The notes under the pieces were generated by a model. The model was given only the letters and a program-made list of their open reading frames with translations, made no database searches and was not told the DNA's origin. A stretch of DNA of 64,000 nt from assembly GCA_002269645.1 (NCBI GenBank), contig NIVC01001171.1:1-64000 (forward strand), in the 5' to 3' direction. Shown in pieces: positions 70 through 58,381 of the stretch. The stretch is from Macrostomum lignano (taxonomy: Eukaryota). A program made the position numbers and the translations under genes. Every line of letters begins with the position of its first letter. Within the stretch, counting starts at the first letter, position 1.

Positions 70-3000
70 AAAACACTTCAGAACTTTCGACCCAAAGCTA
101 TCGATCACTTTAGCATGACAACGGAGGTTAATTTGGGCGACTTGAGGCAGCTAACAATTTGGATCAGCAGCACCAGCCAGTTGGACTCTTGGCTCATGTC
201 AAGAATAGTTATCACTGACTGTCAGAAAAATACTCGTAAGAAAAACCTAGTTGATAAGTTTTAGTATATGGGATAGGTTGAGTTTAATGCCCTATGATGC
301 TCATTTTCCCTACCAACACAGGTATTTTTCATTCTAAACGACTGGGTGAAGCCACACAGCGACCAACTGGTTCATCTCGCCACCAGGGAGAATTTGTCGT
401 ATTGCCCTGGCCTGTTGCGCAACAATCTGAGCCGAAAGCTGACCGACGATCACATCTGGATGTCGGTGCTGCGCCGCAAGACTGACACCAATTTCTCGAG
501 AATTGAACGTCTGGGCGTCTGTTTCAGCGTGCTGTTCCTCACAATGATCGCCAACGCGATGTGGTACGGCGTTGGGGACGGCGGCTCAAACGCCCAACAG
601 ATGGTCCACATCGGGCCAGTGAAGTTCTCCGTGAACGCTCTGCTAACATCCATACTTGGTGCCTTGTGCGTTGTTCCAGTCTCCGCTCTGATCGCCTTAC
701 TCTTCATGAAGTCGCGCCTTGGCGTCGGAAAGAGGTCGCGAAAGTCTCAGCCAGTGATTTTTCTTCAAGAACGATCCATCGATACTCCACTGTATCAGCA
801 AAGACCACACAGCAGTCGGTCAGCAACAAATCGAAGCAAATTGTCCTACCGTTCTGGTGCAACATAGTTGCCTGGTTCCTAGTGCTGGCCAGTGTACTAG
901 TTTCTGGCCTATTCTTAGTGTTCTACGCCATGGACTGGGGCCGAGACAAGTCTCAAGAGTGGCTGGCGGCTTTCTTTCTGTCAACGTTTCAGTCTGTACT
1001 TATCATTCAACCACTAAAGGTAGGCATGCGATTGACATACTCGTATTTGTCTATGTTTAGGCATGACTCATGTCCACTCACCGATGCCTCGTGTCCACTC
1101 AGCGATGCCTTGTGTCCACTCAACGATGCCTCGTGTCCACTCAGCGATGCCTTGTGTCCACTCACCGATGCCTCCTGTTCACTCACCGATGCCTCGTGTC
1201 AACTCAACGATCCCTCGGGTCCGCTCACCGATGCCTCCTGTCCACTGTCTGACGTCTTACTATCCACCTACCGATGCAAAAAACAAAGGGAATACTTAAT
1301 ATTTCGATTGCTACACAGTATCTAAACATGTTTGTAGTCAAAACTGAATATGTTTGCTTCCTAGTCCTACGACAAGCAGGTGTTGATTTAAAAGTGTTAT
1401 CATCTGTTATAGTTTTTCGATTCGTATCATTAACTAGTGCTGCATACTCACACGAGAAACCTAATATAGTTTATTAAAGTATTCCAAAAGCATGTGCCCT
1501 TCTTATTTACATTATCCAGGTACTCGCTATTGGGCTGGTGATTTCAGTAATAATGCGCAAGGACTACGACGCGATGAAGATGGACTTGGTGCGAGTAAGG
1601 TACCATAACAACGCTAGAAAGAGAGGTATTGCCTTCAGTGATTCGCTTGATTTCTGGTTATTGTAAAGATTTTAACACAGTTCACTTTGCTTAACTGTTT
1701 CAGAGGTCTTCAAATACCTGCATGAACTCGAGGAAGAAGAAAAGAACGACGAACTGCTGAAAAAAGCCAGGAAGACTACGGTGGACCTGATATTGAGCCT
1801 TATTCTGCTGGTCCTCCTGTACTGCATCTGCTACGGAAACTTGGATCCTGTCACCTACAATCTGCATAAAAGCATTAAAATACATCTCGGAGTGGACAAA
1901 CTGAGCATGGTCAGCACGTTTGATAAGTACTACGAGTACCTGCGGACAACACTCATAACGGCACTGTACTCCAGCGACCTACCCCAGTTGGTAAATAATC
2001 TTAGTCAGTCGCAAGAATCGAGTTTCATCAGTGACCTCGCCGGTTATCGCTTAAGTCGCGTCACTGTGCGCCAGCTGCGCATCCGGCCAGTGGACGTGCA
2101 CCGTCTGGCACCCCCTGGCGGTGTCCATTTCAGCGAGGAAGTTCGCGACACCGGCTGTTACAGGCCCGGATGGCGAGAGCTGCGAGTCTGCAACTACTCA
2201 GAGACTCAGTCAGCTTTGGAGCTGGCATTCGTGGACTTGCCAGCAAAGCTTACCGACAGTATCGACTATTGGGGCCGCTTGAAGTTATACAGCGGCGGCG
2301 GATTCACCGCTGTGCTACCGAACGGAGCCAATCGAACAATGGAGCTTCTGACTGAGTTGCAGCGATTTAATTGGCTGGATAACTACACCAGACTGGCGAT
2401 TGTTGAGATGGACCTGTTCTATCCCAGTGTAAATTTGTTCACCAGCGTACTTCTCAGTCTGGAACTGCAACCTTTCGGCGGCAGCTTAAGCAACAGTGAG
2501 CTGTACAGTACCCGCTTGTACCGTTACATTGGAGCCGCTGGACTGTTCGCCCTGGTCTCGGAGATCCTCACCGCCCTGCTGTGTCTGATTATGATTTCTC
2601 GCGTTGTGCTGAGCATCAAGGAGCAAGGCCGTGCGTACTTCAGCAGCGCCTGGGCCTGGCTTGGCCTAGCCATGCACGCCTGTCTCGTATCGTGCGCCGT
2701 TTGCTACGGTTTGCGAACGGGCGCCACAATTGCCTCGCTAAACCAGCTGCGCAACGCTAAACTTCTGTCTACTAATCTGCGATATGTCATGTTGGTCAAT
2801 CAGCAGTTTTTCTACTTCCTAGGTGCAGCCACCTTCCTACTGCAGGTGTCATTTATTAATATTGTTAGGTTCAGTCGAGGGCTACACCATTTGCAAGGCA
2901 CAGTAAAGAAGTCGCTCGCCGAGCTGACGTCATTCATTCCGGTCTTTTTGATTGTGTTTTTTGCATTCACTCTGCTGCATCATCTGCTGCTTGGATGCCT

Positions 3001-3958
3001 TGAAGAGCCCTATAGGTCTGTGCTGGACTCGATTATAACAAACTTCTCAGCCATGCTGGGAAAATTTGACATGCAGTACGTGAGTCGCAACGGCCTGCTA
3101 GCAAAGTTGGCATTCCTGCTCTATGTCTCCTTCATCATGTACATCGTGTTGAATGCCTTCATTGCTATTATCAACGAATCATACGAGACGGTGCGCGAAG
3201 AGGCCGAGACAAGCCCCAGCGAGGAGGACTTCCAGTTGCTGGACCAGATTCTGGCCAACTTGCGCAGCCTGATGACCTGGAAAAGGAGTAGAGGAGAGGA
3301 GTACCTGGAAAAGGAGGAGTACGAAGGTGAGAAAGTTGCCTGGGCTATAAAAATATCGGTCAAATTTAGTGCTCATATGCATGCAGGATGGGATATCGAA
3401 CATTAAGTCAATACAGATCGAATCATCGTTAATACGGGGGCTGAGCAGCTCAGCGGTGAAGGCGTCTGACACCTCGAGCCACGAACCCTGGTTCGACTCT
3501 GTGCGACATTCATTTGAGACTTGTGCACCAAACAGTGGCCGGGGGGTCTCGTGCGATTCACAACCATGAGGTCCAGCCCCCGAGGCACATAGAGTGTATA
3601 TATATAGGAAAATTTTAATCACACAAACAGAAAAAACCTTCTGAAACCATGTACATGTACGCATGGCTTTGACTATATTTATTGCCAAAACTGAGTGCTT
3701 TCAAAAAATGCTCGTTTCTGCATGCATCTGGTTTAAAGATACTCTGGATTGACCATCGGGATCCTCGGCACGACGGGAAAAGTTACTTTAGTTTAAACAG
3801 TTGCCCGAGGGAAAGTTAGGCCATTCTTTTGTTGTTGATTATAAGAGTCTGAATACTGATTCACTGATCATCTGCTCGTTTCAGAGTGGCTTCGCGCTGC
3901 GGAAAACATGGAGGTTCGACTGCAAAGGCTCGTTCGGGAGTGCTGCGACAATAGTTGA
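70..3958 (+). CDS. Polycystin-1-like (PKD1L family) gene, 3' portion: PLAT domain, TM segments, TOP domain, channel domain. Approximate exons ~70-235, 322-734, 770-1019, 1520-1625, 1704-3326, 3885-3958; 5' part lies outside the window
   Basis: PLAT-like NFRPKAIDHF...LRQLTIW...WLMSRIVI. PKD1 motifs DDHIWMSV...FSRIERLGVCFSVLFLTMIANAMWY, LPFWCNIVAW...KSQEWL...QSVLIIQPLKV, YSGGGF and WLDNYTRLAIVEMDLFYPSVNLF. GT/AG junctions at 1020/1519, 1626/1703 and 3327/3884 keep the frame to TGA 3956-3958. The first two junctions are uncertain. Confidence 0.87.
1068..1262. repeat. 21-bp intronic minisatellite (ACTCACCGATGCCTCGTGTCC), about 9 copies
   Basis: Direct tandem periodicity, reflected in the repetitive ORFs (DASCPLS)n. 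Confidence 0.9.
3436..3580 (+). mobile_element. tRNA-derived SINE-like fragment in the last PKD1L intron
   Basis: A-box-like AGCTCAGCGG and B-box GGTTCGACTC (3490-3499) at tRNA spacing, but no intact cloverleaf. Confidence 0.5.
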
Positions 3959-11584: not shown

Positions 11585-14311
11585 ATGGTAGGCTACTCAT
11601 GCTCAGTCTGCCGGGACGCTGTCCCCTGCTCAGCCAGCAGCTGCTGTGCATTGCCATGCGGCCACGTGTTCCACCAGGCCTGCGCAGACACCTGGCTGGC
11701 CACATCGCGCTGTTGTCCGCTGTGCCGGGTGCGGGTGCCGCCAAAACCCGGCCCGCTCAAGCTGTTCTTCTCCAGCGAGGACTCCACTATGGACTGCAGC
11801 GTTGTTGACGCCGGCGGCGACTCGGCGTCCACGGCTGCTGACCTTCGAGTCCGAGTTGACGAGCTGTCCAGCTTGCTTCGCGGCGAGCAGGAGGCGCGCG
11901 AGTCTGCCGAGCTGCGATTGGCTGCGGCAGAAGCCGACCTTGCGGAGGCTGGCCGGCAGAAACTGCGCATGCAGAAGAGTCTGGATGTGGCCAGCCTGCA
12001 GGTGTCCCAGCTGCAGTCCTGCGCCAGTCAGCTGGAGGACGCATCCAGGTGGGTAGCGAGAGCTCATTCTGTAGATAGTTGAGTCGGAGCACACTCAGTG
12101 CAGTCAGCACATACTCAGCACACACTCAGTACACTCAGCACACACTCAGTACACTCAGCACACTCAGTACAGTCAGCACACACTCAGTGTAGTCAGCACA
12201 CTCAGTACAGTCAGCACACTCAGTGTACAGTCAGCACACTCAGTGTAGTCAGCACACTCAGTTAGAGATGTTCCGAAAGCGAATTTTCTGTCGAAATCGA
12301 AATCGAAATCGAAATTCGCTACTTTCCGAAATCGAAATCGAAATTTTCCGAAATCGTAATTCAGAAAAACAAAGTTTAGTACAACCGACACTCAATTTTC
12401 TACTTTCGATTTACTGCTCATGCAAAACAAAATACATGTATGTTTAGCAAAAGTTCGTTTATTTTCGGCCACTAAAAAGTAGAATCCCTCATTGCCACTT
12501 TTAAATGCAAAATTTTTTTTCGACGCGAAAACTACATATACTGTAAATGTGTTAAGTAATTTATTTGAACTAGTGCCTTTAAAAGAAACACTAAGGCGCG
12601 TATATTGCATTACTAGACGGTATTAAAGCACGGCAGCAAAGCGCGCCTTTTCCCTGCTAGACAAAACAAATTTCTCTGCCTTTATTTGTCTAGGCGGTAG
12701 GGTATAGGGTGTATACTGAGTTGTACATGTATAAAATGTACAGTTAAAATGTACATGTATCACTGCATGACTAGCAATAACTGAGATCGTGTAAACGATA
12801 ATGCATGTACATGTACGGTAAATGTACATATATATACTGTAAAATGCGAAAAATATGCAATATATCAGCAGACGCTTTTGCAGCTTTTGCAGCTTCCACA
12901 TGTACAAACTACCATGTTACATGTCCTACATGCATGGAACAGTTTTAACAAATTCAAATAGTTTTACATGTAAAAATTGTATAATATCACCGATAAAAGA
13001 CAGTAACGAAGTTCTAAAAAAACTAAACTCAGATAAAACTTTCGGAAGTAGGCACTTCCGAAATTTTGACTTCCGAAATTTTTTCGAAATCGAAATCGAA
13101 ATTTCGGAACATCTCTACACTCAGTACAGTCAGCACACACTCAGTGCAGTCAGCACACTCAGTGCAGTCAGCACACTCAGTGCAGTCAGCACACACTCAG
13201 TACAGTCGAAACGGATTGAATTGGTAAAATCTCACTGAGAAGACCTTGAACTCATCGCCATATATAAAAATTCTTTAGAGAGGCCGACCGTTGGCGCAAG
13301 GAGGCCCGCGAGTGCCGGGAGTCGCTCACCCTGTACGAGCACCTACGCGCAGTTGTCGAAGGCGACGCGGCCGAGGCGGAGCGCCAGCTGGCGGAGTGCG
13401 GCAGCGCGGGAGCTACTCAAGCCTCGGTGCGCGAGCTCATGACTATCGGTATGCAGCTTCGCCGGCATCTGGACAGGGCTAGGCGAGAGAAGCGGGACCT
13501 GCTGACTAGGGCCAACCACGCCGAGGTCAGGCTTCGGCGGGCCAAGGAGCGCCTGACGGCCATGCAGCAGCAGCAGCAGCTTGGAGCGACTGGCACGCCT
13601 TCCAATCAACGACGCGGACCCTCCGCCAGCGTCGGCTGCCAGACTGACGGTGGCTCCGTTGTTGAATGCCTTCAGGAGTCACCGGCCGCCGCCTGTCCTC
13701 GCTCCCCGGTGTTCCGCGGCAGCTCGGCTCGGCAGCAGCGACGACAACCGCAGCCGGTGAACGACTCAATGGCTGTGGTTGTCTTGGACGACGACGAGGA
13801 CGAAGAGATCGATGGAAATGACGACGGCGTGTCGCCTCTGACCGGCCTCGCCTCCTGGCGCCCGACGCCGTCGTCTGTTGAATCGCCGATGCTTCGGACG
13901 CCGTTAAATCCATTTCGACGTGCGCACAGCGCCACCTCTGTTGTGGTGCTGTCTCAGCAGCGGCCTCAACAGCAGCAATCGCAGCCGCAGTTCTTGCCGC
14001 CGCAGCCTCCGTCACGTCCACCGCCTCCGAAGGCGGTCATCGGGCCGACCAATGCAGACCGGGTGGCCATCCCGTCAGCCGCTCTCCTGGCCAGCCGGTC
14101 ATCCTCCGCTGCGCCTCAGTCGCCGATACGACCGAAAATTCGCTCGGTTCTGTCTAGGAGAAATCCTGCCGGAGGCGGTCAGTTCGACTGCCAAAGAAGA
14201 TTGCGTCCAGTCGAGGAGTGGGGAGTCGCGGTGCAGCCAGCGGCGGCGGAATCGCGAAGTACTTTTATTCTAAGCCGAGTGACTGCGGAGGCGGTAGTGC
14301 CCAGTAGCTAA
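11585..14311 (+). CDS. TRAIP: TRAIP/NOPO-like RING E3 ubiquitin ligase, exons 11585-12048 and 13279-14311
   Basis: N-terminal RING CSVC...CGHVFHQAC...WL...CPLCR, then a coiled coil. [16 protein letters not shown]...[23 protein letters not shown] resembles the TRAIP zipper. The phase-2 intron AG|GTGGGT...TTTAG|A restores the frame. Confidence 0.72.
12085..12262. repeat. Degenerate CACACTCAGT(A/G)CAGTCAG minisatellite, resuming at 13116-13205 after the inserted element
   Basis: The same unit occurs on both sides of the 12265-13115 element. Confidence 0.8.
12265..13115. mobile_element. Non-autonomous TIR element (about 850 bp) in the TRAIP intron
   Basis: TIR GAGATGTTCCGAAA / TTTCGGAACATCTC with TA on both sides, plus subterminal (CGAAAT)n repeats. 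Confidence 0.8.
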
Positions 14312-14626
14312 TAGCTTGGTAGTTATTGATTGTGACTTGAGTAGAGCTGCGGGTTTGGTGACTTATTGGTAGAATATCGATTTTGTGTCAAAATTATTGA
14401 ATCGTATCTTGCGCTTTCTAGTCAGCTAATTAAACTGAGTTTATAGGTAGGGGTATAGCTAGCAGGATATAGTGTAATAAATATGATATATCACCGTGGG
14501 TCTAGATTCCAGTATCTGCCATTAGTCGGGTTACTTAGTTTCAATAGATCTGGTATTTATTTAATAGTATCGAAGTATCTATCAACAGTTACGAATGTAA
14601 TATCTAGCTCGTAGTTACTAGTATCG

Positions 14627-15620: not shown

Positions 15621-16099
15621 CACATGTTAGCTTATTAAATGATTTAAAACGTTCACCACATCTAATTAACTGCAGCAGTATTTTAGACAAAGCTTAGTTG
15701 TTAATAGCGGCTCAAAATCTTTTATCAATCCGCAAATGAAAAACTGCATTATATATTTTTTATTTATTCTTTGGCTGTGTGCCAATGATACTTTTCGATG
15801 ACCATGCTAGGACTTAAGCTCTTTTATATAAACATTTTATAGTCTCTATTATTATTAAATTAACGATTTTCATTGTAATTGCTCAGCATTTGTAGCTAAG
15901 TGTTGGAGGGCGTTTTCATGCTTTATTTTTCTGTATTCGCTCTTGTCCTGCATTTTTTAATCAAATACACCCCACTGAGGTGCTGCAATTTCTATTCCCT
16001 ACACAATTTTCACCGAACTGTCTAAAACCGAAGGAAATATGAGCGGTCTCATTTTTTATGATCTGCACACGCGTCTCTTGAACCGCCCTCTCAGATTCC

Positions 16100-17291: not shown

Positions 17292-19379
17292 TTGGTCGCA
17301 TCATCTTGTCTGGCTCTGTCAATCTATCCTCAGACGATCAGATTTGCTATTTGCGACCACAACTAGCTATAGGCTATAGCACAACTGAGTTGGTTGCAAA
17401 ATATGTTTGTATCTCACTTCTGTGTCAATCTTGGCTGCAGATTTCGACTAACTTTTCCTGACGATGTATAGTCCACTAGTGGTGTTACATGTAGATGTAC
17501 ATAGATGTACATGTAATATCAGAGACTGCTGGGAGGTAAGGAGAAGTATGAGAGGCAAACCGAGGGAAAGATTATTACAATGGTTTTTATACGCTCGTAG
17601 CATTTTTCTAGAGCTTTGCATAAAATACAGCAGTTCCTATGCACATTACTGCGGGCTACTATGGGCTGAGGCTCGTGGCGAATACTCAGCTTTTACGAGC
17701 AGTCTAAAAATTTGTTCTCGTATGTTTGCCTATAGATTATACAATACCAATACCATAGACCTACTGATGGCAGAAAGATAGAAATCCTCGGGCGGCTTCG
17801 CGTCGCATCCCTTGGATTTTTCGTCTTTCTTGCTCTCAGAAGGTCTATGGGATAGCCATTCCCCTCGATTTGCAATGTCAGGGACAGACGTCATTTCTCT
17901 GCCAAAAATCCATGGATTGCAATGTGAATTAGACATATATTTTTTCTCGTCTCACTGGATAAATGTCAGTCCATGGAATCATTTTCTAAGCTCTAAATCA
18001 TAAACAGTAAGTTGAGAAAAGCATCTTATTGGGATCCTGTTTCAATGTGCTGCTGGTTCGACGCAAATTGTCACGCCTCTGCTCGACATGAAATCCATAC
18101 TTGGTGGTATCAGCGACTTGCTTCGCGAAGAGATGGACCTTTCTATCCTTCTTTGCTGGCAAAGGCAGACTAGTGGACGGTTCTTGGCCTTGGGTGCAGC
18201 AACGCTTTGGATCCAGAATTGCGGGCCATTTCCTTCAAGATCTTGGCGACTCGGAGCTGAAGTTATCGGCTGAACAGGAGTAACCGTCTACTTTTCCACC
18301 CTGCCGTGACAGGCTGGTCGGGCCCTTTAACAACTGTACCTTCAAATTCTACTACACAAGTGGCAGACCAACTCAGGGAGAAGTGGGATAACACCCCCGA
18401 CTGCCGGCAATCCCGCGCGGGCTGTGTCCTTCCTCCGCCCTGCGCAGGGCCCTGCTTTGACTCAACCGCAGGGACATTTCTGCCCAGTAAATCGGGTGGG
18501 GATTTTGATGCAATGTCTGAAATTCGACAAGCCATTATAAAGCAGAAAATCTCATCTTTCATTCGACTACATACTTTTGTGTATATGTTAATTTAACAAG
18601 AAGTGTTACCTACTACTTATTTGGCCTATGGTGGCCCAATATGCCCATAGAGTTACAAAGAAGATCGCTGGCAGAACTTTTGTGCATGACCTTGAAATGT
18701 AATGTGACAGGGGTGCAAGCTCCAAGATATTAATTGATGCACCAAAAGTCAATAAATTTACTTCAATGCTTCGCTAAGTGAGCATGGCATGTTGCTGCCC
18801 TTCCTAGAGTGCGCATTCATAATAGCGTTTTCACAGATACAACTCAGCTTGCGAAAGTGCTGCTATAAGGATCCTCTTTGTAACTCTACAGGCCACACAA
18901 GTAAACATATACAAAAAAGTTTCTACAATCAAATGAAAGATGAGATCTTCTGCTTTCCAATGACTCGAAAATTGTTGAAGTTCAAGCATGCATTAATAAT
19001 CCATAGGCAAAAGTATCACTATAATTTTTGGACACCCCCTCGCAATTACTAGCTTAAGAATTGAGCCTAATCCATACAAAACAAAAAGCATGCGGATATT
19101 AAAGGATTAGGCAAAAACAATCAGCTTTGCTCAGGCGGTGAGGTTATGTTATACGAGTTGGCCAACTGGGAAGGAATCGATATAGTAAACAGAACAAAAA
19201 CAATTTATGTGGGCAAGAGTTCATTTTTCGTGCTGAAGTTCACAGTACGTTTGGAAGCGGAAAAACAATAAAATTGAGTGCTTATGATTAGTTTAGTGAT
19301 TTGGGAGTTTATAGAGTCTCAACAGCCAATTATATACGAGCAGTTGGTTAATTTCGTTCTTTTCATCAACTTCGCCGGT

Positions 19380-19715
19380 TTATTTCTTGCAGTGGTACTT
19401 GTGAATCTTGGCGCACTTCACGCACTGGACCGTGCCCCACAGTTTGCACTCGCAGTAGTGCTTTCTGCACTTGCCGTGCTTGATGACCCGGCCGACCTTG
19501 ACTTTGCAGCACTTGATGCAGATGAATGTCATGCTGACGACACTGAAGGTGCGCTTGCAGCAGCCGGCCGCGCCGCAGCTCTTCGAGACGCCGCGGTCCT
19601 CAATGGCGGTGCTCTCGTCGGCGGAGTTCTCAACCGGGCTGGCCGCGGCCGGCCTGCTTGAGAACAGCAGGCAGAGGCTGAAGGCCGCAATTATGAGTAG
19701 CAGATTAACACGCAT
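19380..19715 (-). CDS. Secreted cysteine-rich cationic prepropeptide, 111 aa (antimicrobial-peptide or toxin-like architecture)
   Basis: Hydrophobic signal peptide ending AAA, acidic propiece SPVENSADESTAIEDR, then a 70-aa region with 12 Cys, 14 Lys, 3 Arg and 1 Glu. GC-rich codons within AT-richer flanks. Confidence 0.82.
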   Translation of the reverse strand: MRVNLLLIIAAFSLCLLFSSRPAAASPVENSADESTAIEDRGVSKSCGAAGCCKRTFSVVSMTFICIKCCKVKVGRVIKHGKCRKHYCECKLWGTVQCVKCAKIHKYHCKK

Positions 19716-20599
19716 CTTCTCTTCAGACTAATAAATGGTCTCGTATGGCTATAGGTGAGATAAGTTCGAATTTGCAGGTCGCTTCGGATGCCCCCAGTTG
19801 TAGGGTTTGGTTGTTGCTTTTATTCGTATGGCAATTTCGCGCTTAGCTCCAACCCCCCCCACCCCTTAGACAGCGGGTTTTAATTGGCCTGAACTGCAGC
19901 TTGGGTAGCTGCTATAGCTAGGATAGGGATAAATGTTGAGCTGGGCTGCTCGTGCACGTGTCCGCTGTTCTCGTGTGCGCCGCTGGGGGTCGGTACGTAA
20001 GATCTCTCTACCTCTCTCTCTGTATTCACTGGTCTCTATTGTCTTCCTTAAGTGTCGTCTAAAGGGTTTGCATTAGCTTTATAAAATTGTCTCATAAACA
20101 GTCACTGCAAAACTACCGCGGCTTATGCTTGAGAAAAGCTAGTTGGAGAGAATGGAGAGGAGCTAGGGGGCAGCTCGCACGTGTTCCAGCTATACACAGT
20201 GGCAATAGACCAGTATCAACTCTCGTAGCTATAATAGAGCAGCTCGACTGCCGATCGCGACTATATAGTTCACAGTACGTGAGCTCGCGCGAGCAAAACA
20301 CACAGTCAGTATAGTAATTTCTGTCGGGTGGCCTGACAGCACAGCGCTTGCTGTACATGTACAGTGTACACTATCACAGCATGAAATTAACTATCGATTA
20401 AAAGCTTGCATTGATCCAATAACTTAAGCTGGAGCATGAGCAGCGGGTATTATATTGAGTACAGCAGTGAGCTGATCGATAAATAGCTGCATGTATATAC
20501 TCAGCAACAGGTACCCCCCTCACTCATGCTGTCACACGCGGCACAGGCACAAAGCATTGTTAAATTGCTGACTCCATCAGGGGCAACGCAACGCAACGC

Positions 20600-22886: not shown

Positions 22887-25800
22887 CTAAGCCTGCGCCT
22901 GCGCTACCTGCTTGTCAGCTTTGGACTGCACCGGCAGGTACAGCTTGAACTCTGCGGGCAGCTCGTCTTCGGTGTACAGCCGGTCGGAGAAGTACACCCG
23001 GCGGATGCGGCAGTTGGCGTGGATCTGCGGGAGTTGAATCATTGCTAATCCAATTCTTTGTTCTTTGATGTTTACCGCTCCCGCACACTTCTTACCTATC
23101 TGTGGTCTTTGATGTTTACCGCTCTCACAGACTTCTGATCTATCTGTGGTCTTTGATGCTTACCGCTCCCGCACACTTCTTATCTATCTATGGTCTTTGA
23201 TGTTTACCGCTCCCGCACACTTCTTATCTATCTGTGGTCTTTGATGCTTACCGCTCTCACATACTTCTTATCTATCTGTGGTCTTTGATGCTTACCGCTC
23301 CCGCACACTTCTTATCTATCTGTGGTCTTTGATGCTTACCGCTCCCGCACACTTCTTATCTATCTGTGGTCTTTGATGCTTACCGCTCCCGCACACTTCT
23401 TATCTATCTGTGGTCTTTGATGCTTACCGCTCTCACATACTTCTTATCTATCTGTGGTCTTTGATGTTCCCCGCTCCCGCACACTTCTTATCTATCTGTG
23501 GTCTTTGATGCTTACCGCTCTCACATACTTCTTATCTATCTGTGGTCTTTGATGTTCCCCGCTCCCGCACACTTCTTATCTATCTGTGGTCCTTGATACT
23601 CACCGCTCTCTCACACTCCGTATCTATATATGGTCTTTGATGTTCACCGCTCTCACACCTCTTATCTATCTGCGGTATCTGCTCTTTTTTAATTTGATTT
23701 GCCAATTCTAACAAAAATTACCCGCCTCCTGATTGCACCAACCTGAACGCGCAGAGTCTCAATGTAGTTAGTGCCGTAGGCTCGCCTAGTGAAGTCGGAC
23801 AAGTTGAACTGGATCTGGTTCCAGCCCTCGTCCAGGCGCATCGGCATGGTGCAGATAAACGGTTTCACCCGGGTGGTGCTCTGATAGTTCGAGGCGCGGA
23901 ATCTGCGCCGAACATGCTTGTCGTCCAAAATCTAAAGTTTTTGAAGTTTTGTTTAAATTTTTAAATTTATTGGAAAACTAATATATTGGAGTTGCTAGAA
24001 AAAATTAACAATGAATTTATTTTTACCTGAATTTCAAAAGTAAAGTACTTTTTCAAGTTTTTGATGATCATGACCAAGAAAGGCAATTTGATGCCAAGGT
24101 CCTTGTCTTTATCTTTTGGACAGGTGATAAAAGTTGTACTGACATTGGTGCCAACAATTTCTAGGACAAGTGATTGGATGTCATTGTCAGTGATGCGTTT
24201 TATGTGACCATTGCGTACCTACAATTAAGAAAGTATTTTATTATTATTTCTATGTAAATTAACAGTAAATTTTTGGGTACAGGGCTGATAAAGTGTTTAA
24301 ATAAGCATAAAAATAAAACAAGAAAATAATGAAATAACTTTTGATATATCAAGTATAATATTAAATTGCTTAGGATGAATTATACTTAAGGCCGCCTATT
24401 GTTTAAAGATACAACAAAAATTAATAATAATAGAAACTTCTGTTAAGATAAAATAAGCTTAATATATCAAATAAGTTTTTATCAGACCTACTCAAGTATT
24501 TATACACATTAAAAATGGCAAATTTAATCAACAATTTATAAAAAATGATTAGATAAATCCAAAAATACATTTTAAAATGCATTTCGAAAAATAAAACAGC
24601 TAAACTTATATTATTTTAAATTATTAAAATATAATATAATATAAACCCAAAATTTCATAACTCCAAAAACAAAAAACCATTGCCTATCATAAACCCAAAA
24701 TAAATCAAACCTAAAATTTCAAATATCATAACTCAGAAAGTTCTAGCAATAGCTATCCAATAAATCAATAATATTTTAATTTTTTGGAGTTATGATATGA
24801 TATAGCCTAAATTTTTGTTCTCTAATATTAGAAGTATTGGACTTATTAAAAATTAATTCCTACTACCTAAGTCTGGTATTCAAAAAAGAACAATAAAAAA
24901 TGCCACTTTACAAAAGTTACTTTTGTATTAAAAGAGCTGGAAATACTAGAACTTTGCCCAATAATATATTTAGTGTACAAAAGATTATAAAAGATATTGG
25001 TCTATCTTTTGTTAAGTATACATGTATAAATTTATGATTTATTAATTTATACATTTTAATATAATGTAAACCTTTTTACTTTGTATCTTTAATAATCTAA
25101 AAGATTTAGTTAGGACTAGCAATAGCATACTAATGCATTTTGCCAAGCATATCTAATGTTGGCAATTGTCAAGTTCCATTTGTTAAATTATTTTGACTCC
25201 AGAAAAGTAATCTACAAACTATTTTAAGAACAAAAAACTATTTCTAAGAGACCCAAGCCTGATTAAGCACTAATTCTATGCTTCTAAACTTATTGTAATG
25301 AGACTAATGCTGGTAAGCTGCAAATAGTCTATGGCCAAAATGTTTAAACATTTTGCAACTTGGAAAATGTCTATGGACTAGTCCAAATGTCTATGGTCTT
25401 TAACAAGTTAACAAATAACAAATAAATAGAAAAAAGTCTTAAATTTATCAGCTACAGCAAAGTTAACTCTTCAATGTCATGGCTAGATGCCTTCCTGCAT
25501 CATTTTTCATTATTTTTCCTGCACAAGTGCAGCCAGCATTGGCTTTGTGTGATATGGAAATAACCATCATAAATGCGCAACAGTCGGCCGAGTCGGCCGA
25601 TCCGGCCGATCGATTTGGCGGCCAACCAAGGAAGTTGCAAAAACACCCACCCAAAAAAACACCCAAGTAGTAGTACTAAGTAGCTGACGAGGCATTTTTT
25701 CTTAATAAGACAGTGATAGTTACTCCTGCCGCTTACCCAAAGTTGCGTTAATTTTGCTTTAGGGTTTTTTACATGTAAGTCGCATTTTTGTTAAAACTAA

Positions 25801-28800
25801 GTCGCACGGCCGACCAAATTTTGGAGGTTGCGCATGTATGATAACCGGGAGTACGAGATCTGCTAGCAGGAAATCTGCTAGCCGAAGTTTGCTAGCGAGA
25901 AATTTGCTTGCCGAAATCTGCTAGCCGAAGTTTGCTAGCCGAAATCTGCTAGCCGAAATCTGCTAGCCGAAATCTGCTAGCCGAAGTTTGCTAGCAGGAA
26001 TTTTGCTAGCGAGGATTTTGCTAGCCAAAATCTGCTAGCAGGAATTTTGCTAGCAAGGATTTTGCTAGCTGCCTTGCTCTCGTAGCTGTTGCATGCTATT
26101 TGCTGTGTTTTGATTCCGATTTGAGCTGCTTTGATTCGTACGAGTAAATATATAACTTATATACCATATACTGCCACTACCAGCCATTAAGACTGAAAGT
26201 TGTGTGTATAGATAAGTTTAAATTTAACTACCTAAACTACAGCTGCCTGAGCTACCTGAACTACGGCCTTACAGCTGATAATGCTAAAACATTATCAAAT
26301 GTCTACGAGTAAAAAAGGTCAAAAATTATAAATGATTTTGACGATTTCCAAGTGCAGTTTTAGCATATACAGTACTTTAGCATACGAGCGTACAGTAACA
26401 CACATGTTGGTGTACAGTATCTATAGCTAGATACATGTATGTCCAAGGTACAATTTACTATAGCTATATGTATTGTTAATGTATAGATATTTTCCATCGC
26501 TTACGGCACTGTGTACAAGCAAAAACTCTATGCAGGTGTGGCCCACAAGCTCTTACCCTGTGATCATGGATGTAATATATTTACTTTATTCAATAGCTTG
26601 TATATGAACTTTTCAATCCACCTACGTTAAAACCTAAATCTTATTTTCTTTTTGTCTATGACTTCATCTACTGATTGCGTTTTAACACGTACATGTACGA
26701 GAACCCACGGCGAAGGCTAGGCGGCAGATTAAGTCGTCCAGATTGGACAATAAAAAATGTCTCTAGCAAATTACAACTTCGTAAATTGCTGTTCGTCGGT
26801 TTTGGTTAGATTATTGCTAGCAGATTTCGGCTAGCAAAATCCTCGCTAGCAAAATTCCTGCTAGCAAACTTCGGCTAGCAGATTTCGTCCAGCAGATTTT
26901 GGCTAGCACATTTCAGTTAGCAAACTTCGGCTAGCAGATTTCGTCCAGCAGATTTTGGCTAGCACATTTCAGTTAGCAAACTTCGGCTAGCAGATTTCGT
27001 CCAGCAGATTTTGGCTAGCACATTTCAGTTAGCAAACTTCGGCTAGCAGATTTCGTCCAGCAGATTTTGGCTAGCACATTTCAGTTAGCAAACTTCGGCT
27101 AGCAGATTTCGTCCAGCAGATTTTGGCTAGCACATTTCAGTTAGCAAACTTCGGCTAGCAGATTTCGTCCAGCAGATTTTGGCTAGCACATTTCAGTTAG
27201 CAAACTTCGGCTAGCAGATTTCGTCCAGCAGATTTTGGCTAGCACATTTCAGTTAGCAAACTTCGGCTAGCAGATTTTGGCTAGCAGATTTCGGCTAGCA
27301 GATTTTGGCAAGCAAATTTCTCGCTAGCAAACTTTGGCTAGCAGATTTCCTGCTAGCAAATTTCATAGACCCATGATAACCAAGCAAGACCTTGCTATGA
27401 TGACAGCTACAACACGTGACCTAATTAACTAGCTAGCAACCTGCCAACTTATTGCCAACCAGTGTGCCTATAATAACTGCCCTGGTATACCTCTTTGACT
27501 GCAATATCGTCAAGGTGATTAGTTCATTGATGGGTATACTTGGGCCTATCCTGGTTGCGATGCCCAAGGCTTAATCCAGAAGGATTCTTTTTTGAAGGGA
27601 GCCACTTAGAGCTGCACCAACTTATTGATATAATCTACTAGTGGTCAGTGGATGCTAGGCAGCAAGAATGTATGCACTAGTGTGACATTAGCTATTAGTC
27701 AATAATTGACTGGCAGAACTTCATCTATAAAATTTGTGCCTAGTACCTATTGGACCATCCAATGTAGCTTGGTAGTGTTAGGTGAGAAGTGGAAATTGAT
27801 GAGTCATATTTCTTCTATTGCAAGTACTACCAAGGTGCCTATCAGCATGGTCAGTGGGTATTAAGCATAGTTGAATGTGGAACATGCAAGTGCATTCTAG
27901 TTGCTGTGCCTAACCATATTGCCATAACAATGCTACCAATTATTCAACAGCATGTGCTCCTAGGGATGTGCATAATTACTAATGGCTGGCAAGCCTTTGG
28001 CCAACTGCAAAACCATACAGTTGTTAATCATCAATTGGCCTTTGTATTTCTGCAGGACCCAACCATCTATACAAATCTGGTCAAAGGCACATGGGCACAT
28101 TGCAAGGCTAAGCTGTGCACAATGCATGGGACCTCACAAGCCCTATTTGAAACATACTTAGAGAAATTTATGTGGCATTATCTGCACCTAGTAAAACTAT
28201 TTGGGAATATCCTTTATTGGATTTTCTATTACTATAGTGTGTAAAGCTTTTACTGTTTATTGACAATCTGACCATAGACAATAATGAGACTTGTTATTTG
28301 TTTCTATTAAGAATTGTTGATTTGTTAACATTTTGGCCATAGACTATTTGTAGCTTTCCAGTGTCAGTCCCATTACAACAAGTTTAAAAGCATAGAATTA
28401 GTGTTTATTCAGGCGTAGGTCTCTTAAAAAAGTTTTTTGTACTTAAAATAGTTTGTAGATTACTTTTCTGGAATCATAATAATTTAATGAACAGAACTTA
28501 AAAATTGCCCTAATGTTTATATATTAAAAAAAACTATAGGATAGGATAGGCTTAGTAGCAATCCTATACTTTTGTTCAATAAATTATTTTGATATCAAAT
28601 TTGTATATAAGCAAAGTTTGTATGTTAGAATTTGATTAACCTTTGATATACCATTTGATATATAATTGATTATCATTTATGGTATAGGACCAAGACTGCC
28701 ACACTTAGGAGCTTGGAAAGGAATTTGGCTCAATGTGTTATTAAATGGTACAAGAGAGAAGATAAGTAGGTAGGAGAGCCAGCAGGACAAGCCTGCAAGA

Positions 28801-30358
28801 GAGGAACCTATGACTAGGCCTATGAGAGGAATAGCAATGATAAAAGATTGGTAGTTCCCTCCTTAATACCAATAGCCAATAATAGCTGTGGTGGTCTTAG
28901 TGTGTGGCAGTCTTAGTCATGCACCTCATTTATTAGCTAGTAGTTGTTTCATTGGGAATTCTTAGAATTAGCTAGGCCTACTGAGCAAAAATTTGATGTC
29001 AAAATAATTTAATATAGGATGACGCATGACTAAGACTGCCACACACCAAGACTGCCATAGCTATTACTGACTATTGGTATTAAAGGGGAGCTACCAATCT
29101 TTTATCATTGCTATTCCTCTTATAGGCCTAGTCATAGGTTCTTTCTTGTAGGCTTGTCCTGCTAGCTCTCCTACCTACTCATCTTTTTTCTAGGGTTTCC
29201 AATTCATTTGTCTGCCAACAGTTTGTCTGCTAAGTAGACGAAATGCCCTTTCCTTTTAAAACTTTTCGTCTGCTGGGAAATGGGATGGGGATAAGGAGTA
29301 GGGGTGGGGAGCTAGGGAGCGGAGGGACTGGAGGAGCTGCCACTGTCCATTAACATTGTTATAAAGCACTGTATATAGCCTGGTCTTTCATTTTTTAACA
29401 AACTATTTTACAATCACCTAAAATAAGAAAGCTTAACTTAAAACAGTAGAAGGAAATTGCTACAAATTTGATAAAGATAAAATATCAGCGAATAGTTATT
29501 CAAAATTATTCAAATTGACAAAATTTCCAGTAGGCACTATAATGCATAGATGACATATTTTGAAGATATTTATTTTGAAGAGACCAACCATCCCTACAGC
29601 AGTTTAACAATGTTAGGCCCTAATGAATGAAAAAGTTGCAGGTTGGGCAGCTCCCCACCCCACTCCATATCCCCTGGCCCCACCCCCCAATTTCCCGGCA
29701 GACGAACAGTTTTAGAAAGAGAAAACTTTTTGTCTGCTCAATAGATGAACTATTAGCAGACGAAATGACTGGCATCCCTTTCTAGCACTATTCAATAACA
29801 CATTGAGCCAAATTCCTCTCCTAGCTTTTAAGTGTGGCAGTCTTGGTCCTACACCTATAGGATTGCTGCTGGCCTAGCTTCTAGTGTAGCAATTAGAATT
29901 AGTATCAATTTAAAATATGATATAATAATATCTAGTAGAATATTCTAATTTAGATAGATAGCTGAGACATTATTGAATGAACTTTAATAAATCTACCTAA
30001 TACCATTTTACTAAGTCCAAAGCAATGTTTTATCTGTTCCTTGCAAATAGATACATTAGAATGTAAGAATGTACTTAACATACTAAACAGTAAACTAGGC
30101 AGTCTAAACAATAGAATATAGGTAATGTATGCAGTTGTGTAAGTAAGAAAACAGAACGCTTAGGCCTAGTTTGAATTAATTTCTAAATTATAATCGACTG
30201 TACCTGTACGTGTTGAAACTATGTTTCATCGAGAAAAAAGATGACAAACTGCAAGCAAGGAGAATGCAAATTACCGTTTGGCTCCAAATCATCAACGGCT
30301 TGCTGCCGATGCTGTACAATATTGAAAGGAATCCACTTTGAAATGTGTTCTTAAACAT
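22887..30358 (-). CDS. CFAP20: Cilia- and flagella-associated protein 20 (BUG22), about 200 aa; exons 30358-30275, 24218-24027, 23931-23743, 23024-22887
   Basis: [22 protein letters not shown] | [21 protein letters not shown]...[24 protein letters not shown] | [44 protein letters not shown]...LRVQ | [17 protein letters not shown]...EFKLYLP. All three introns are canonical GT-AG, phase 0. Confidence 0.97.
23062..23675. repeat. 44-bp minisatellite in CFAP20 intron 3
   Basis: Unit TCTGTGGTCTTTGATGCTTACCGCTCCCGCACACTTCTTATCTA. Confidence 0.93.
25847..27372. mobile_element. Non-autonomous MULE/Foldback-like element (1526 bp) in CFAP20 intron 1
   Basis: TIR GGG...TGCTAGCAGGAAATCTGCTAGC with long GCTAGC-rich subterminal arrays in opposite orientation. 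Exact 9-bp TSD ATGATAACC at 25838-25846 and 27373-27381. Confidence 0.9.
27500..28244 (+). pseudogene. Merlin (IS1595/IS1016-like) DDE transposase remnant
   Basis: VEIDESYF...GQWV..IVE.GT.KC.LVAVP...[14 protein letters not shown](T)NGWQAF...TVVNH...W...K...HG.....YL..FMW follows the Merlin pattern. The second catalytic D appears as N. Confidence 0.85.
28681..29855. mobile_element. Nested inverted-repeat elements: outer TIRs 28681-28745 and 29790-29855, an inner hairpin with about 165-bp arms (28761-29185) and a further IR pair (about 29195-29775)
   Basis: GGTATAGGACCAAGACTGCCACACTTA versus TAAGTGTGGCAGTCTTGGTCCTACACC. The inner arms differ mostly by C/T and G/A transitions. Confidence 0.72.
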
Positions 30359-43140: not shown

Positions 43141-45537
43141 ATGCCATCCCTGCACCAGATTGACTCCGGAAACGGCGCCAACGGTTCGAAGCATCGGGTG
43201 CACGACGACGGCGGCGCGGCAGCGACTTCCGCGTCCGGCAGCGGCAGCACTGAGGAGCCATCCGGCGACTCCGAGGCCTGCCTGCCGCGGGTGAAGCTCG
43301 CCACCAACGGCGCTGGAGTTGGCAACGGCAACGACGACGGTGTAACAACCCGGAGAAGCCGGTGCAGCGCCCGGACCTGCATCCTGACGGCGGCGGTGAT
43401 CATTCTGGCGGGTGGCCTGGCCGCCCTCTGCGTCCTGTACTTCGTGGTTGGACCTGCGCGCGGCTTCAGCTTCGGCTTTGGCGGCGCTGGCGATGGCGGC
43501 GCCAAGGGAGGCGCCGCGGCCAGCAGCCAAATCGGAGCCGAGGGCTGCGCCGTGGTTGTCGCCGCTGCCGGCGCGATGTCGGGCCCGGAGATGGCGGCCG
43601 CCACGGCCTTCATGCGGCCCGGCGAGTCACCCTGCCGCAGCTTCTACCGGCACGCCTGCGGCGGATTCGCCGACGGTGCCGCCGGCGGTGTCGCCCTGCC
43701 CTGGACTGGAGACCGGGTCCGGCGCCAGGTTGGCGCCATCGACTTGGCCGGCCGGCGCATCCGGGAATCGCTGCTGGAGTCGCTGCTGCTACCAAAAGAG
43801 CTGCTGGCCGGTCCCGGCGCCGCCAGCTGGAAGTCCGCGGTCGGCAATCTGACTTTGGCCTGCTCGCGCCAGCTGGCGCCGCTGACAGCCAAAGAGCTGC
43901 GCGCCGTTTTCGCCGACCGGCGCCGATTCGCCCAGACCGCCCTGCTGGCCAGCCGCTCTGCCGCCTGGGGTGTCGCCGACTCGCCGGAGAAGGTGCTCGC
44001 CCAGTTCGCCTCGCACGGCCTGCCCGTAGCCTTCGAAGTCTCTCCGCAGGTGGCGCAGCCGGCGCCCGTGACGGCCGGCCACCTGCCGCTGTGCTTGCGG
44101 CCGGTTCGCCCCGCCCTGCCGCCGATGCCGCGCGACCGGATGCACCGCCTGATCGCCGCCGCTTTCGAAGCGATGGGCCGCGGCGTGCCGTTTCTCATCG
44201 CCGGGAAGATCCTGGCGCTGCACAACGGCCTGCACGAGATCCTTCGAAGCGCTGATGTGGCCGACGCCAGCTCAGCGCAGTTCGAGATGCGGCCAATTGC
44301 AGCTCTGCACGCCCTGTTTCCTAATGGCCGTTTCGGCTGGGAGGCCTTCCTGGCCGAGCTGCTGGCCGGCGGCGCCGAAGGCGGCCCGACAGCTTCGAAT
44401 GTGGCCGGCTACTCCTCGGCCTGTCTCAGCGGGGAGCGGACAGTGACGGAGGCGGTCAGGCTGGCGGCCAGCCAGGACCCGGACACCCTCATCGGCTACG
44501 CGCTGATTAACGCTCTGGCCGGGCTGCGGCCCCACATCGGACACCTGCTGCCGCCGAAGCTGCTGCAACTTCTGACCGTCGCCACCACATCCGAAGACGT
44601 CGCGCTCGACAAGCTGTCGAAACCATCGCAAGTTCCCGACGTCTGCTTGGACACCGCGCTAGCGCTGTTTCCACGAGTTGTGCACCGCGTCCTGGCCGAC
44701 AAGCACCCGCTGGGCTCGGCCGAGGGCCTCACGCGCCGAGTGCGGGCCGCCTTGGTTGGCCTCGGGGTCAAGAGCAACGTTGAGGACCTGGCGCTGGACC
44801 CATACCTGACCGGTGGCGGTGCCAGCGCCTACAGTGACGCCGCACTGTCGGCTCTGCACAGCGACCTGAGCCTGCCGGAACCGGAAGAGGGCTACCCAGC
44901 CGCTCTGCTGTCGGCCATGCGCCACGCCTTTCTGGCGCCGCTGCGGGCCGCCCTGCGCGGTCACTCGATAGCGCCGCTTCCATCGTCCAGCGAGCCGCTG
45001 CTCCTGGCGCGCGACCTGTCGCCGACGGCTTCCGAGACGCCGGTTTTCGACAGCCGCCTGCCGCTGCATTTCTACCTGGCCGCGCTGGACGGCGCCCAGT
45101 TCTCCCTGCTGCTGGCGCGTCAGCTGATGCCGCCGAGGCCGCGCCCGCCGAAGCCGGAGCTGCTAGCTCTGCACGGCTGCCCGGGCATGGACTCTGCTAT
45201 TGCTGCCCGTCTGGCGACGCTGCGGGTCAGCTTCAAGGCGGCTCTGACCGCTGCGACGGCGTCGTCTGCGACATCGGAGTCGAGTGCGGCTGACTGGCGC
45301 AGAGGATTCTACCTGCGCGCCGGGCAGCTGCTCTGCCAGCGGTTCGCTTCGCCCGCCGAGGCCGACGGAGCTGCTGCCGCGGTCGACTGGGCCATCGGTG
45401 GCCTGCCGGATTTCCGGCGCGTCTTCCAGTGCGGCCTGGAGGCTGAGCCGACGGCCGGAGAGGCGGTGGACCGTCGGAGGGGCTGCCCGAGAGTCCCTGA
45501 TGGCGGCTCTTGGGCCGTTGGTGCAACTGCCGCCTGA
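43141..45537 (+). CDS. Intronless type II membrane neprilysin (M13)-like protein, 798 aa, predicted catalytically inactive
   Basis: N-terminal TM ILTAAVIILAGGLAALCVLYFVV; M13 signature MRPGESPCRSFYRHACGGF; C-terminal FYLRAGQLLC and GLPDFRRVFQCG. No HExxH in the protein. Confidence 0.85.
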   Translation: MPSLHQIDSGNGANGSKHRVHDDGGAAATSASGSGSTEEPSGDSEACLPRVKLATNGAGVGNGNDDGVTTRRSRCSARTCILTAAVIILAGGLAALCVLYFVVGPARGFSFGFGGAGDGGAKGGAAASSQIGAEGCAVVVAAAGAMSGPEMAAATAFMRPGESPCRSFYRHACGGFADGAAGGVALPWTGDRVRRQVGAIDLAGRRIRESLLESLLLPKELLAGPGAASWKSAVGNLTLACSRQLAPLTAKELRAVFADRRRFAQTALLASRSAAWGVADSPEKVLAQFASHGLPVAFEVSPQVAQPAPVTAGHLPLCLRPVRPALPPMPRDRMHRLIAAAFEAMGRGVPFLIAGKILALHNGLHEILRSADVADASSAQFEMRPIAALHALFPNGRFGWEAFLAELLAGGAEGGPTASNVAGYSSACLSGERTVTEAVRLAASQDPDTLIGYALINALAGLRPHIGHLLPPKLLQLLTVATTSEDVALDKLSKPSQVPDVCLDTALALFPRVVHRVLADKHPLGSAEGLTRRVRAALVGLGVKSNVEDLALDPYLTGGGASAYSDAALSALHSDLSLPEPEEGYPAALLSAMRHAFLAPLRAALRGHSIAPLPSSSEPLLLARDLSPTASETPVFDSRLPLHFYLAALDGAQFSLLLARQLMPPRPRPPKPELLALHGCPGMDSAIAARLATLRVSFKAALTAATASSATSESSAADWRRGFYLRAGQLLCQRFASPAEADGAAAAVDWAIGGLPDFRRVFQCGLEAEPTAGEAVDRRRGCPRVPDGGSWAVGATAA

Positions 45538-57453: not shown

Positions 57454-58381
57454 TCAGGCATGCCACTGCTGAAAGCAGGCTTCCAAGCAGAGCCCCGGTT
57501 CCCCTGGACACTCTGGGCAGCAGTAGATCGTGCGCTTGCTGCTTCCAGCTCTGTAGCAGACACGACAGCGCTTTGTTGGTATAGGCTGACTGTCCCGCGC
57601 CACGATCTTCGTTGGAAAGTGCGGACTGACTGGGCCACCTGGAGCGGCCTGGATGGCAGCGGCCGGGCGCTTCCTGCTCCTTCCGATACGCTCCACCAGC
57701 TCCCGAATGCTGGCCTCTAGAAACTTGGCGAACGTCTTCTCTCCACCGCACCGGCTGTACACAATCCAAGCGTTGCGAATCATTTGAAGAAAAAGATGCA
57801 AGCCGAGCTTCAAAAACCACTTTGTAGTTTTCCTCCCTGGCAGATGAGGCTGTAGATGACTGTCCATTCCGTCAACACCACCCATGCACCGATTGTAGGT
57901 GAGAACTGACCTGCTCTTCTGCACCACTGTTTCTGCTCCTCCACGAACCACGCGTCTGGTTTGAACCCTCTCAGCCGCCTCTTTCGTGTCCAGCAAATCA
58001 GAGTCTTCAGGCCACTCTCCTTTCGTGCAACGATCTCACCCCGTCTTTGCGCATGAAGGCGACGTCGTTAGGTGGAACATGCAGCTGTCTGAGCTCAATC
58101 GGCACCCTCGGTCGGCCCGGACGGTACAAGTCAGGTGCGTTCCTTGAGTCAGAAGGTACTCTGACAGCCGATAGGAACCGAACCATTTGTCGACAAAGAT
58201 GCGATAGCCTTGGTGCAGCAAATGGTAGCAGAGCTCAACAACAATCTTCTCGTTGAAGGACAGATTGTCTCCCTGCAACTGTTCATCTAACCAGCGGTTC
58301 TCCTCTGGGGTCGAGTGAACGCGGAAGTTGTATAGGTAGCCTGAGTCAGGGACTTCTGCGATATTAAAGCCGAGTTTCCAG
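57454..58381 (-). pseudogene. piggyBac (PGBD4-like) transposase remnant, 5'-truncated and frameshifted
   Basis: SGYLYNF, GYRIFVDKWF...L...GTHLTCTVRADRG, YNRCMGGVD, KWFLKL..HL......NAWI, and the C-terminal Cys-rich domain KRCRVC...TIYCCPEC....LC...CFQQWH. Confidence 0.9.

Follow-up and report, generated by a model that had tools for sequence, protein, structure and literature searches.

Whether a short reading frame in a flatworm genome encodes a genuine secreted peptide, and what such a peptide might do for its bearer, is the question raised by BOX15_Mlig004404g1, a small gene in the first 64 kb (the window, 64,000 nucleotides) of contig NIVC01001171.1 of the Macrostomum lignano assembly Mlig_3_7. 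The first part of this question can be answered with high confidence: the locus is a real coding gene with a secreted product. The answer to the second part is more tentative; the predicted product, in which a signal peptide and an acidic stretch precede a strongly basic domain with 12 cysteines (Cys), would most plausibly be a lineage-restricted, polycationic, disulfide-rich peptide serving host defence. A candidate novel cationic secreted peptide had been proposed here by an earlier reading of the DNA made without database searches (the sequence-only reading), and the outcome of its various claims is given below along with the evidence that bears on them.

The coding nature of the locus is evident from its base composition. 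The GC content at codon positions 1, 2 and 3 is 0.45, 0.46 and 0.85, respectively, and the corresponding asymmetry (0.39) is the highest among the 33 ATG-initiated open reading frames (ORFs) in the window that are 100 aa or longer, the next reaching 0.20, while confirmed exons of the neighbouring genes range from 0.13 to 0.18. The gene is codon-optimised, with TGC used for 13 of 13 Cys, CAC for all four His and AAG for 11 of the 14 Lys residues, and it is set in flanks of 38-48% GC. An overlapping antisense ORF of 127 aa has a negative score on synonymous codon usage; the length of the ORF by itself is not significant in 64 kb. The gene is regarded as real because of the extreme asymmetry in GC content at third codon positions (GC3), the uniform choice of C- or G-ending codons, a coding sequence (CDS) better conserved than its upstream flank and an annotation based on transcripts.

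The annotated CDS (GCA_002269645.1, NIVC01001171.1) has the same coordinates as the ORF (Table 1), and the gene model consists of a single exon, in agreement with the intronless gene described earlier. RNA-seq-derived transcripts form the basis of the Mlig_3_7 annotation (StringTie/TACO, TBONE pipeline, TransDecoder; PMC5730564), so that the gene model constitutes indirect evidence of transcription. Together with a second genomic copy (discussed below), it speaks against the lack of a transcript or homolog by which the sequence-only reading would have been refuted. The AATAAA hexamer which that reading had seen overlapping the stop codon is indeed present and, as a candidate poly(A) signal, would imply a very short 3' untranslated region. 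The AG acceptor that it had placed 12 nt before the ATG corresponds to TTATTAG; the heptamer is found at that place, but as a candidate trans-splice acceptor it fits the published M. lignano spliced-leader (SL) motif, [T/C]TNCAG, only loosely (PMC8629364). The TAG of this heptamer is also an in-frame stop, closing the reading frame upstream. The published leader is 35 nt long and carries an ATG at its end (PMC8629364), and SL splicing at TTATTAG would place this ATG in frame, adding MSEEK before Met1. An operon with trans-splicing, as read from the 'g2' suffix of the second copy, was rejected, the suffix serving to number the copies within a 95%-identity transcript cluster and not the genes within a transcription unit. 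Absence from Logan was likewise rejected as an argument against transcription, M. lignano CFAP20 being equally invisible there. A scan for bacterial-type promoters and terminators, signals irrelevant to a eukaryote, found none.

The exact 111-aa protein is already held in NCBI/UniRef, and the single related entry found in databases is 'hypothetical protein BOX15_Mlig004404g2, partial [Macrostomum lignano]' (hereafter g2, the gene in the window being g1). The g2 copy is located on contig NIVC01000946.1, which is collinear with the window at 92-100% identity. The first 81 codons are common to both copies, with two replacements (I9M and R21G), both non-synonymous. A 1-nt deletion in codon 84 of g2 (AGAAAG to AGAAG) causes a frameshift, and the end of the gene is missing along with its 3' flank (Table 1); this larger deletion abuts a repeat-rich segment. 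Both deletions fall at 10240-10290 of the compared stretch of NIVC01000946.1. Of the two assembled copies g1 is the sole intact one, and g2 is either a truncated homeolog, a truncated allele or an assembly error. The copies differ by two substitutions and one indel in the 280 nt of CDS that they have in common, as against 23 substitutions and 17 indel columns in the 280 nt directly upstream. This lower divergence of the CDS is suggestive of purifying selection; it is not proof of it, because a block farther upstream (20276-20500) is conserved between the contigs as well as the CDS itself. Contig identity also changes exactly at the deletion breakpoint (19082/19435), from 99-100% downstream of the gene (6495-19082) to about 92-96% over the gene and its upstream region (19435-29826; about 93.5%). 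Such a step points to recombination, to a chimeric join in the assembly or to a switch between haplotypes or homeologs. Directly downstream of the gene, beside the g2 breakpoint, lie nested inverted repeats (18530-18965; arms of 24-37 nt, 81-88% complementary), possibly resembling a miniature inverted-repeat transposable element.

A frameshifted and truncated g2, two substitutions that are both non-synonymous and the lack of an ortholog among 1.84 billion representative proteins would also be expected if no functional protein were made at all, either because TransDecoder called a spurious ORF on a transcript downstream of CFAP20 that is non-coding or arises by read-through, or because the gene is being lost. 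Such an outcome is nevertheless very improbable, as a GC3 of 0.85 with consistently C- or G-ending codons is very hard to obtain without translation-linked selection. Further, the complete signal peptide, the even number of cysteines, the stop codon overlapping AATAAA and the scarcity of substitutions in the CDS (2 in 280 nt, with 23 in the adjacent 280 nt) argue against it.

The protein can be divided into a signal peptide (MRVNLLLIIAAFSLCLLFSSRPAAA), an acidic stretch (SPVENSADESTAIEDR) and a Cys-rich domain (GVSKSCGAAGCCKRTFSVVSMTFICIKCCKVKVGRVIKHGKCRKHYCECKLWGTVQCVKCAKIHKYHCKK). The signal peptide has canonical n-, h- and c-regions (MR, VNLLLIIAAFSLCLLF and SSRPAAA, followed by S), with a charged n-region, a hydrophobic core of 16 residues (3-18; mean Kyte-Doolittle value 2.7) and A-x-A at -3/-1. 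The published SignalP 4.1 call for BOX15_Mlig004404g1 is Y, with a product that begins SPVEN at Ser26 (PMC10414684, S5 File), and the AlphaFold2 (AF2) model shows a helix at residues 4-19. The signal peptide noticed in the sequence-only reading is upheld by these data, and the description of the protein as a classical secretory precursor is, on predictive grounds, well supported.

The acidic stretch had been described as a propiece of 16 aa ending in Arg. The stretch, its charge (-4.5) and its terminal Arg stand, but its removal as a propeptide finds no such backing. The sequence-only reading had named ProP as a check, and the published ProP 1.0 result leaves the propeptide column blank for this protein, giving no cleavage site and a predicted peptide of 86 aa (SPVENS...HCKK; PMC10414684, S5 File). 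R41 is a lone Arg (IEDR followed by G), positions -4, -6 and -8 are not basic, and neither a proprotein-convertase nor a dibasic site lies between the acidic piece and the Cys-rich domain. The term 'propiece' is thus an interpretation of the sequence, under which a cut after Arg41 by another protease would be possible. In the AF2 model the stretch is disordered (predicted local distance difference test, pLDDT, below 50). The further claim that it neutralises the cationic domain was overstated, as it balances no more than about a quarter of the positive charge (about 4.5 of 16).

The Cys-rich domain has the spacing C4CC12C2CC12C4C1C7C2C7C (framework C-CC-C-CC-C-CxC-C-C-C). Its 70 residues include 17 Lys and Arg, a single Glu and four His, resulting in a charge of +16.0, a pI of 9.7 and a mass of 7.8 kDa; the net charge would be about +12 if the acidic stretch were retained (86 aa). 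Cysteine accounts for 17% of the residues, while the aromatic ones are two Phe, two Tyr and one Trp. All counts given in the sequence-only reading (12 Cys and their framework, 70 aa, about +16 and four His) are correct. The two CxxC (CIKC and CVKC), one CxC and two CC pairs, together with the four His near Cys, would offer ligands to a metal, as in a metallothionein- or zinc-ribbon-like protein acting inside the cell or after secretion. This possibility is hardly credible in view of the clear signal peptide, the five aromatics and the hydrophobic hairpin, which are atypical of metallothioneins, and of the absence of any metallothionein or zinc-finger match in Pfam at E<=10. Metallothioneins are cytosolic, contain about 30% Cys and have essentially no aromatics or His, whereas the peptide has a signal peptide, a little over half that share of Cys and both kinds of residue.

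Searches for relatives returned very little. Neither Pfam nor a sequence search of the PDB gave a match at E<=10, the latter in spite of the hydramacin and theromacin structures present there. The known family or metallothionein-like protein that might have accounted for the peptide was accordingly not found in either database. An exhaustive phmmer search of 1.84 billion representative proteins and a word-indexed search of 5.8 billion proteins each retrieved the g2 copy only, and tblastn found no paralog in the window at E<=100; a weak match at 56613-56825 (E=0.05) was rejected as a paralog, as it has neither a signal peptide nor a matching Cys framework. As phmmer finds only g2, and as the published group of antimicrobial peptide (AMP)-like proteins to which the gene belongs (group 109, see below) holds only g1 and g2, the gene is, as judged from these collections, restricted to Macrostomum lignano. 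In single-sequence AF2 the full precursor reached a pLDDT of 50.6, and the 70-aa domain, modelled entirely as beta-hairpins, one of 61.2. Foldseek against the PDB with the 70-aa model returned nothing below E=1, and the best matches (E 1.4; affimers and unrelated beta proteins) were rejected as meaningless.

In cysteine-stabilised alpha-beta (CS-alpha-beta) defensins, big defensins and macins, as in the present precursor, a compact basic domain of 4-8 kDa that is rich in disulfides comes after a signal peptide and, optionally, an anionic segment. The peptide nevertheless falls outside each of these families. The CS-alpha-beta defensins are marked by CxxxC...CxC, the former in a helix and the latter in a strand, and by 6-8 Cys, while the peptide has no CxxxC, has 12 Cys and gives no Pfam match at E<=10. 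Big defensins combine a hydrophobic N-terminal domain with a beta-defensin-like 6-Cys domain ending in CC, and the peptide, with its 12 Cys, has neither a terminal CC nor such a hydrophobic domain, nor a Pfam match. Macins (8-12 Cys; a knottin joined to a CS-alpha-beta scaffold) are free of CC doublets, of which the peptide has two, and no Pfam match at E<=10 links it to them. In toxins with an inhibitor cystine knot (ICK) the framework is C-C-CC-C-C and the connectivity 1-4, 2-5, 3-6. The linear framework of the peptide does not map onto this order; its fold model is weak (pLDDT 51-61), and Foldseek gave no match below E=1. In linear sequence, the statement of the sequence-only reading that the spacing fits none of macins, CS-alpha-beta defensins, big defensins and ICK toxins is borne out by Pfam and the PDB (no match at E<=10) and by the phmmer search, which yields only g2.

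Other families share single traits with the peptide. Prokineticin, MIT1, astakine and colipase (10 Cys, in the pattern C-C-CC-C-C-CxC-C-C) resemble it in a local CGAxxCC, in the gap of about 12 residues between this motif and the following Cys, in a CxC farther on, in their basic character and in size; they differ in the number of Cys (12 in the peptide) and in the remaining spacing, and the peptide has no PF06607 match and belongs to neither PF06607 nor PF01114. The prokineticin lead was rejected, since the CGAxxCC likeness covers only 8 aligned residues and is not significant (BLASTP E of 0.17 in a single pairwise comparison with a PROK1 sequence). Granulins and snakin/GASA peptides also hold 12 Cys in about 60-70 residues, and snakins are, in addition, strongly cationic and antimicrobial. 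The framework of granulins is C-C-CC-CC-CC-CC-C-C and that of snakins C-C-C-C-C-CC-CxC-C-CxC-C. Both differ from the framework of the peptide, for which no Pfam match to them was found.

The likeness to spider and cnidarian toxin precursors is of a different kind, as it resides in the order of parts: a signal peptide, an acidic spacer whose final Arg is preceded by E/D at -2/-3 (here ending ..IEDR) and a basic, disulfide-rich peptide. Acidic residues at these positions are reminiscent of the spider 'processing quadruplet motif' and serve as a lead only. The peptide might, on this basis, be a toxin or deterrent released by a cut after Arg and used against predators, prey or competitors, with their ion channels or membranes as targets. 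Such a role is improbable: M. lignano is a diatom grazer without a venom apparatus, ProP gives no cleavage, the framework has no counterpart among these toxins and no similarity to a toxin family appears in Pfam or in the PDB (by sequence or Foldseek).

A computational record of the gene was already available. BOX15_Mlig004404g1 is listed as fAMP-LP 109 among the flatworm AMP-like peptides of Irvine et al. (2023, PLoS Pathog; PMC10414684, S5 File), a class delimited by a length of <150 aa, a positive SignalP result, a predicted peptide of 10-100 aa and positive calls by >50% of 11 AMP predictors. BOX15_Mlig004404g1 has all these properties, and its membership, like the class, is computational and predicted only. 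For the 86-aa peptide 9 of the 11 predictors are positive (81.8%), and the value for the truncated g2 is 72.7% (PMC10414684). Group 109 comprises g1 and g2 only and was dropped at the step 'Same genome', which concerns groups found in a single genome assembly (PMC10414684). The exact protein being listed, it shares its Cys-rich nature with 72% of the prioritised set, but the class is defined by predictors and not by homology or activity; no Cys-rich peptide was synthesised or tested in that study (PMC10414684). The novelty claimed in the sequence-only reading is thereby narrowed: the searches matched no family or fold, but the CDS was already present in GenBank, in WormBase ParaSite and in the flatworm AMP-like listing (PMC10414684). 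The gene is thus not new to databases and its AMP-like character is already flagged computationally, while what is new here, as far as sequence comparison reaches, is an unmatched cysteine framework among secreted, cationic, disulfide-rich peptides. Groups 105-119 of the same S5 File contain many other small, secreted, Cys-rich or polycationic predicted peptides confined to M. lignano (PMC10414684). In Mlig008283g1 (S5 File, PMC10414684) a long acidic propiece is followed by RRRRRR and then by an Arg/Tyr/His-rich peptide; the precursor layout is one that recurs in unrelated M. lignano genes.

Flatworms are reported to have no big defensins, myticalins or CS-alpha-beta peptides, and the AMP-like peptides predicted for them are mainly Cys-rich (PMC10414684); a niche free of the canonical Cys-rich AMP families is hence available. 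Under the favoured, albeit tentative, reading of the gene as a host-defence peptide, removal of the signal peptide between Ala25 and Ser26 would yield a protein of 86 aa, which a further protease, if it cuts after Arg41, would shorten to 70 aa. With the 12 Cys probably paired in as many as six disulfides, a small beta-rich core would be stabilised around a short hydrophobic beta-hairpin (TFSVVSMTFICI), and the remaining surface, dominated by Lys, Arg and His, would bind polyanions. The peptide would then act outside the cell as an AMP-like effector, attaching electrostatically to polyanionic surfaces, most plausibly to bacterial envelopes in the mucus, epidermis or gut of the worm. The acidic N-terminal stretch, if it matters, might partly mask the charge during secretory transit. 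In a bolder version of this proposal, which is unlikely, Mlig004404 would found a new structural class of host-defence peptides, polycationic, with six disulfides and restricted to Macrostomum, in a phylum without defensins, big defensins and other canonical Cys-rich AMPs; it might be of recent or de novo origin, with one post-polyploidy copy already decaying.

Several considerations weigh against a role in defence. AMP predictors have learned from cationic, Cys-rich peptides, and their false-positive rates are high. The source study itself advises that predictors should not alone direct prioritisation, the length of the peptide (70-86 aa) exceeds that of about 90% of invertebrate AMPs, and dozens of similar species-only, small, secreted, Cys-rich proteins are present in M. 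lignano (PMC10414684). Besides, one of the two assembled copies is broken, a state compatible with weak constraint, and the structure is not predictable (pLDDT 51-61), which leaves both the number of disulfides and the fold tentative. A full-text literature search did not find 'Mlig004404', and the supplements of PMC5977470, PMC5816591, PMC7336406, PMC5946080 and PMC12896417 do not contain it. Finally, orphan, fast-evolving secreted proteins of Macrostomum are often reproductive (PMC7336406).

This last point bears on a different role, that of a reproductive secretion (seminal-fluid from the prostate, antrum, cement-gland or sperm-associated), which would bind partner tissue, sperm or egg through its charge and evolve fast under sexual selection, any antimicrobial effect being secondary. 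At least 76 prostate-limited transcripts are known in M. lignano; signal peptides occur in half of those with an identified ORF, and most are without informative homology. Reproduction-related genes evolve fast in Macrostomum (PMC7336406), and the orphan status of the gene and its degenerate second copy would fit such a turnover. A reproductive function is nonetheless somewhat unlikely: the sequence holds nothing specific to reproduction, and both the sequence and the gene id are absent from the supplements of the seminal-fluid screen and of the three-species reproduction study, files that may be incomplete or use older transcript ids.

The composition of the domain (very high in Lys, with 17% Cys and some Tyr and His) would also suit a structural or adhesive component, that is, a small, Lys-rich, Cys-crosslinking protein of mucus, rhabdites, eggshell or adhesive that would glue or harden material via charge and disulfide exchange. 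Small, Cys-rich, cationic proteins do so in the adhesives of mussels and barnacles, and the peptide may resemble mfp-6 and cp-20k. Temporary adhesion in M. lignano makes use of secreted charged proteins (PMC6410801, PMC9229212); however, the known ones are large repeat proteins and not peptides of 8 kDa, whereas the present peptide has neither repeats nor the richness in Tyr of proteins based on 3,4-dihydroxyphenylalanine (DOPA). The gene id was also not found in the full text of the adhesion literature, and a structural function is rather improbable.

The locus is of interest because the effectors of flatworm barrier immunity are essentially uncharacterised, the canonical Cys-rich antimicrobial families being absent, and because Cys-rich and species-specific candidates were deliberately left aside by the published screen (PMC10414684). 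Since M. lignano is the one flatworm with routine RNA interference and transgenesis, an orphan peptide of 8 kDa with 12 Cys and a charge of +16 is tractable in this species. It provides an entry to a possibly new disulfide fold, to the birth and decay of lineage-restricted secreted peptides after a recent genome duplication (one copy being intact and one truncated) and to the host-microbe biology of flatworms. Even if it proves to be a seminal-fluid or structural protein, it would still be a defined member of a fast-evolving secretome. Its individual importance is moderate, as it is one of dozens of similar peptides confined to M. lignano.

Table 1. Coordinates of the peptide gene, its parts and other features in the window.
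Feature	Position	Strand	Description
CDS BOX15_Mlig004404g1	19380..19715	minus	complete, single-exon, ATG to TAA; 111 aa + stop
Signal peptide, residues 1-25	19641..19715	minus	MRVNLLLIIAAFSLCLLFSSRPAAA; hydrophobic core and A-A-A before Ser26; published SignalP 4.1 positive
Acidic 16-aa segment, residues 26-41	19593..19640	minus	SPVENSADESTAIEDR; charge -4.5, pI 4.05; propiece or retained N-terminal tail
Cys-rich polycationic domain, residues 42-111	19383..19592	minus	70 aa, 12 Cys, +16; no Pfam/PDB match
AATAAA hexamer	19379..19384	minus	overlaps the TAA stop; candidate poly(A) signal, implying a very short 3' untranslated region; read from sequence
TTATTAG	19728..19734	minus	candidate 3' (trans-)splice acceptor, ending 12 nt 5' of the ATG
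Segment missing from g2	19083..19434		352 bp; last 18 codons, stop and 3' flank; blastn and MAFFT against the window
CFAP20	22911..30358	minus	four exons, about 90% identical to the human protein
RING-finger gene	11585..14311		convergent with the peptide gene
Polycystin-type cation channel gene fragment	346..3406	plus	Polycystin_dom and PKD_channel, E ~1e-26; contig start
798-aa ORF	43141..45537	plus	70% GC, GC3 0.82, Ala/Gly/Leu-rich; no Pfam match
piggyBac-type transposase C-terminal zinc finger	57454..57996	minus	zf-Tnp_2, E=3e-8; transposon remnant

The remainder of the window is a mixture of genes and repeats (Table 1). CFAP20 is found 3.2 kb upstream of the peptide gene and shares its strand, and the interval between the two contains a 21-bp minisatellite (20601-21554; 45 copies, 95% matches) that gives rise to two spurious ORFs, of 427 and 328 aa, one on each strand. 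The introns of CFAP20 harbour a 44-bp minisatellite (23055-23676) and a fragment of an ISXO2/IS1595-like DDE transposase (27789-28244; Pfam E=4e-10). A near-perfect array of the 12-bp repeat GGGAACGGGATC at 38674-39807 (94.5 copies, 99% matches) accounts for three repeat ORFs of 385-405 aa (PVPD / GNGI / GTGS), while the 798-aa ORF farther along is probably a real gene. Towards the end of the window, arrays of a 176-bp repeat (98-99% matches) stand in opposite orientation at 60398-61375 and 63638-64000, on either side of a 472-aa ORF on the minus strand (61723-63141; no Pfam match), and the ORF with the arrays at its two ends may constitute a mobile element.

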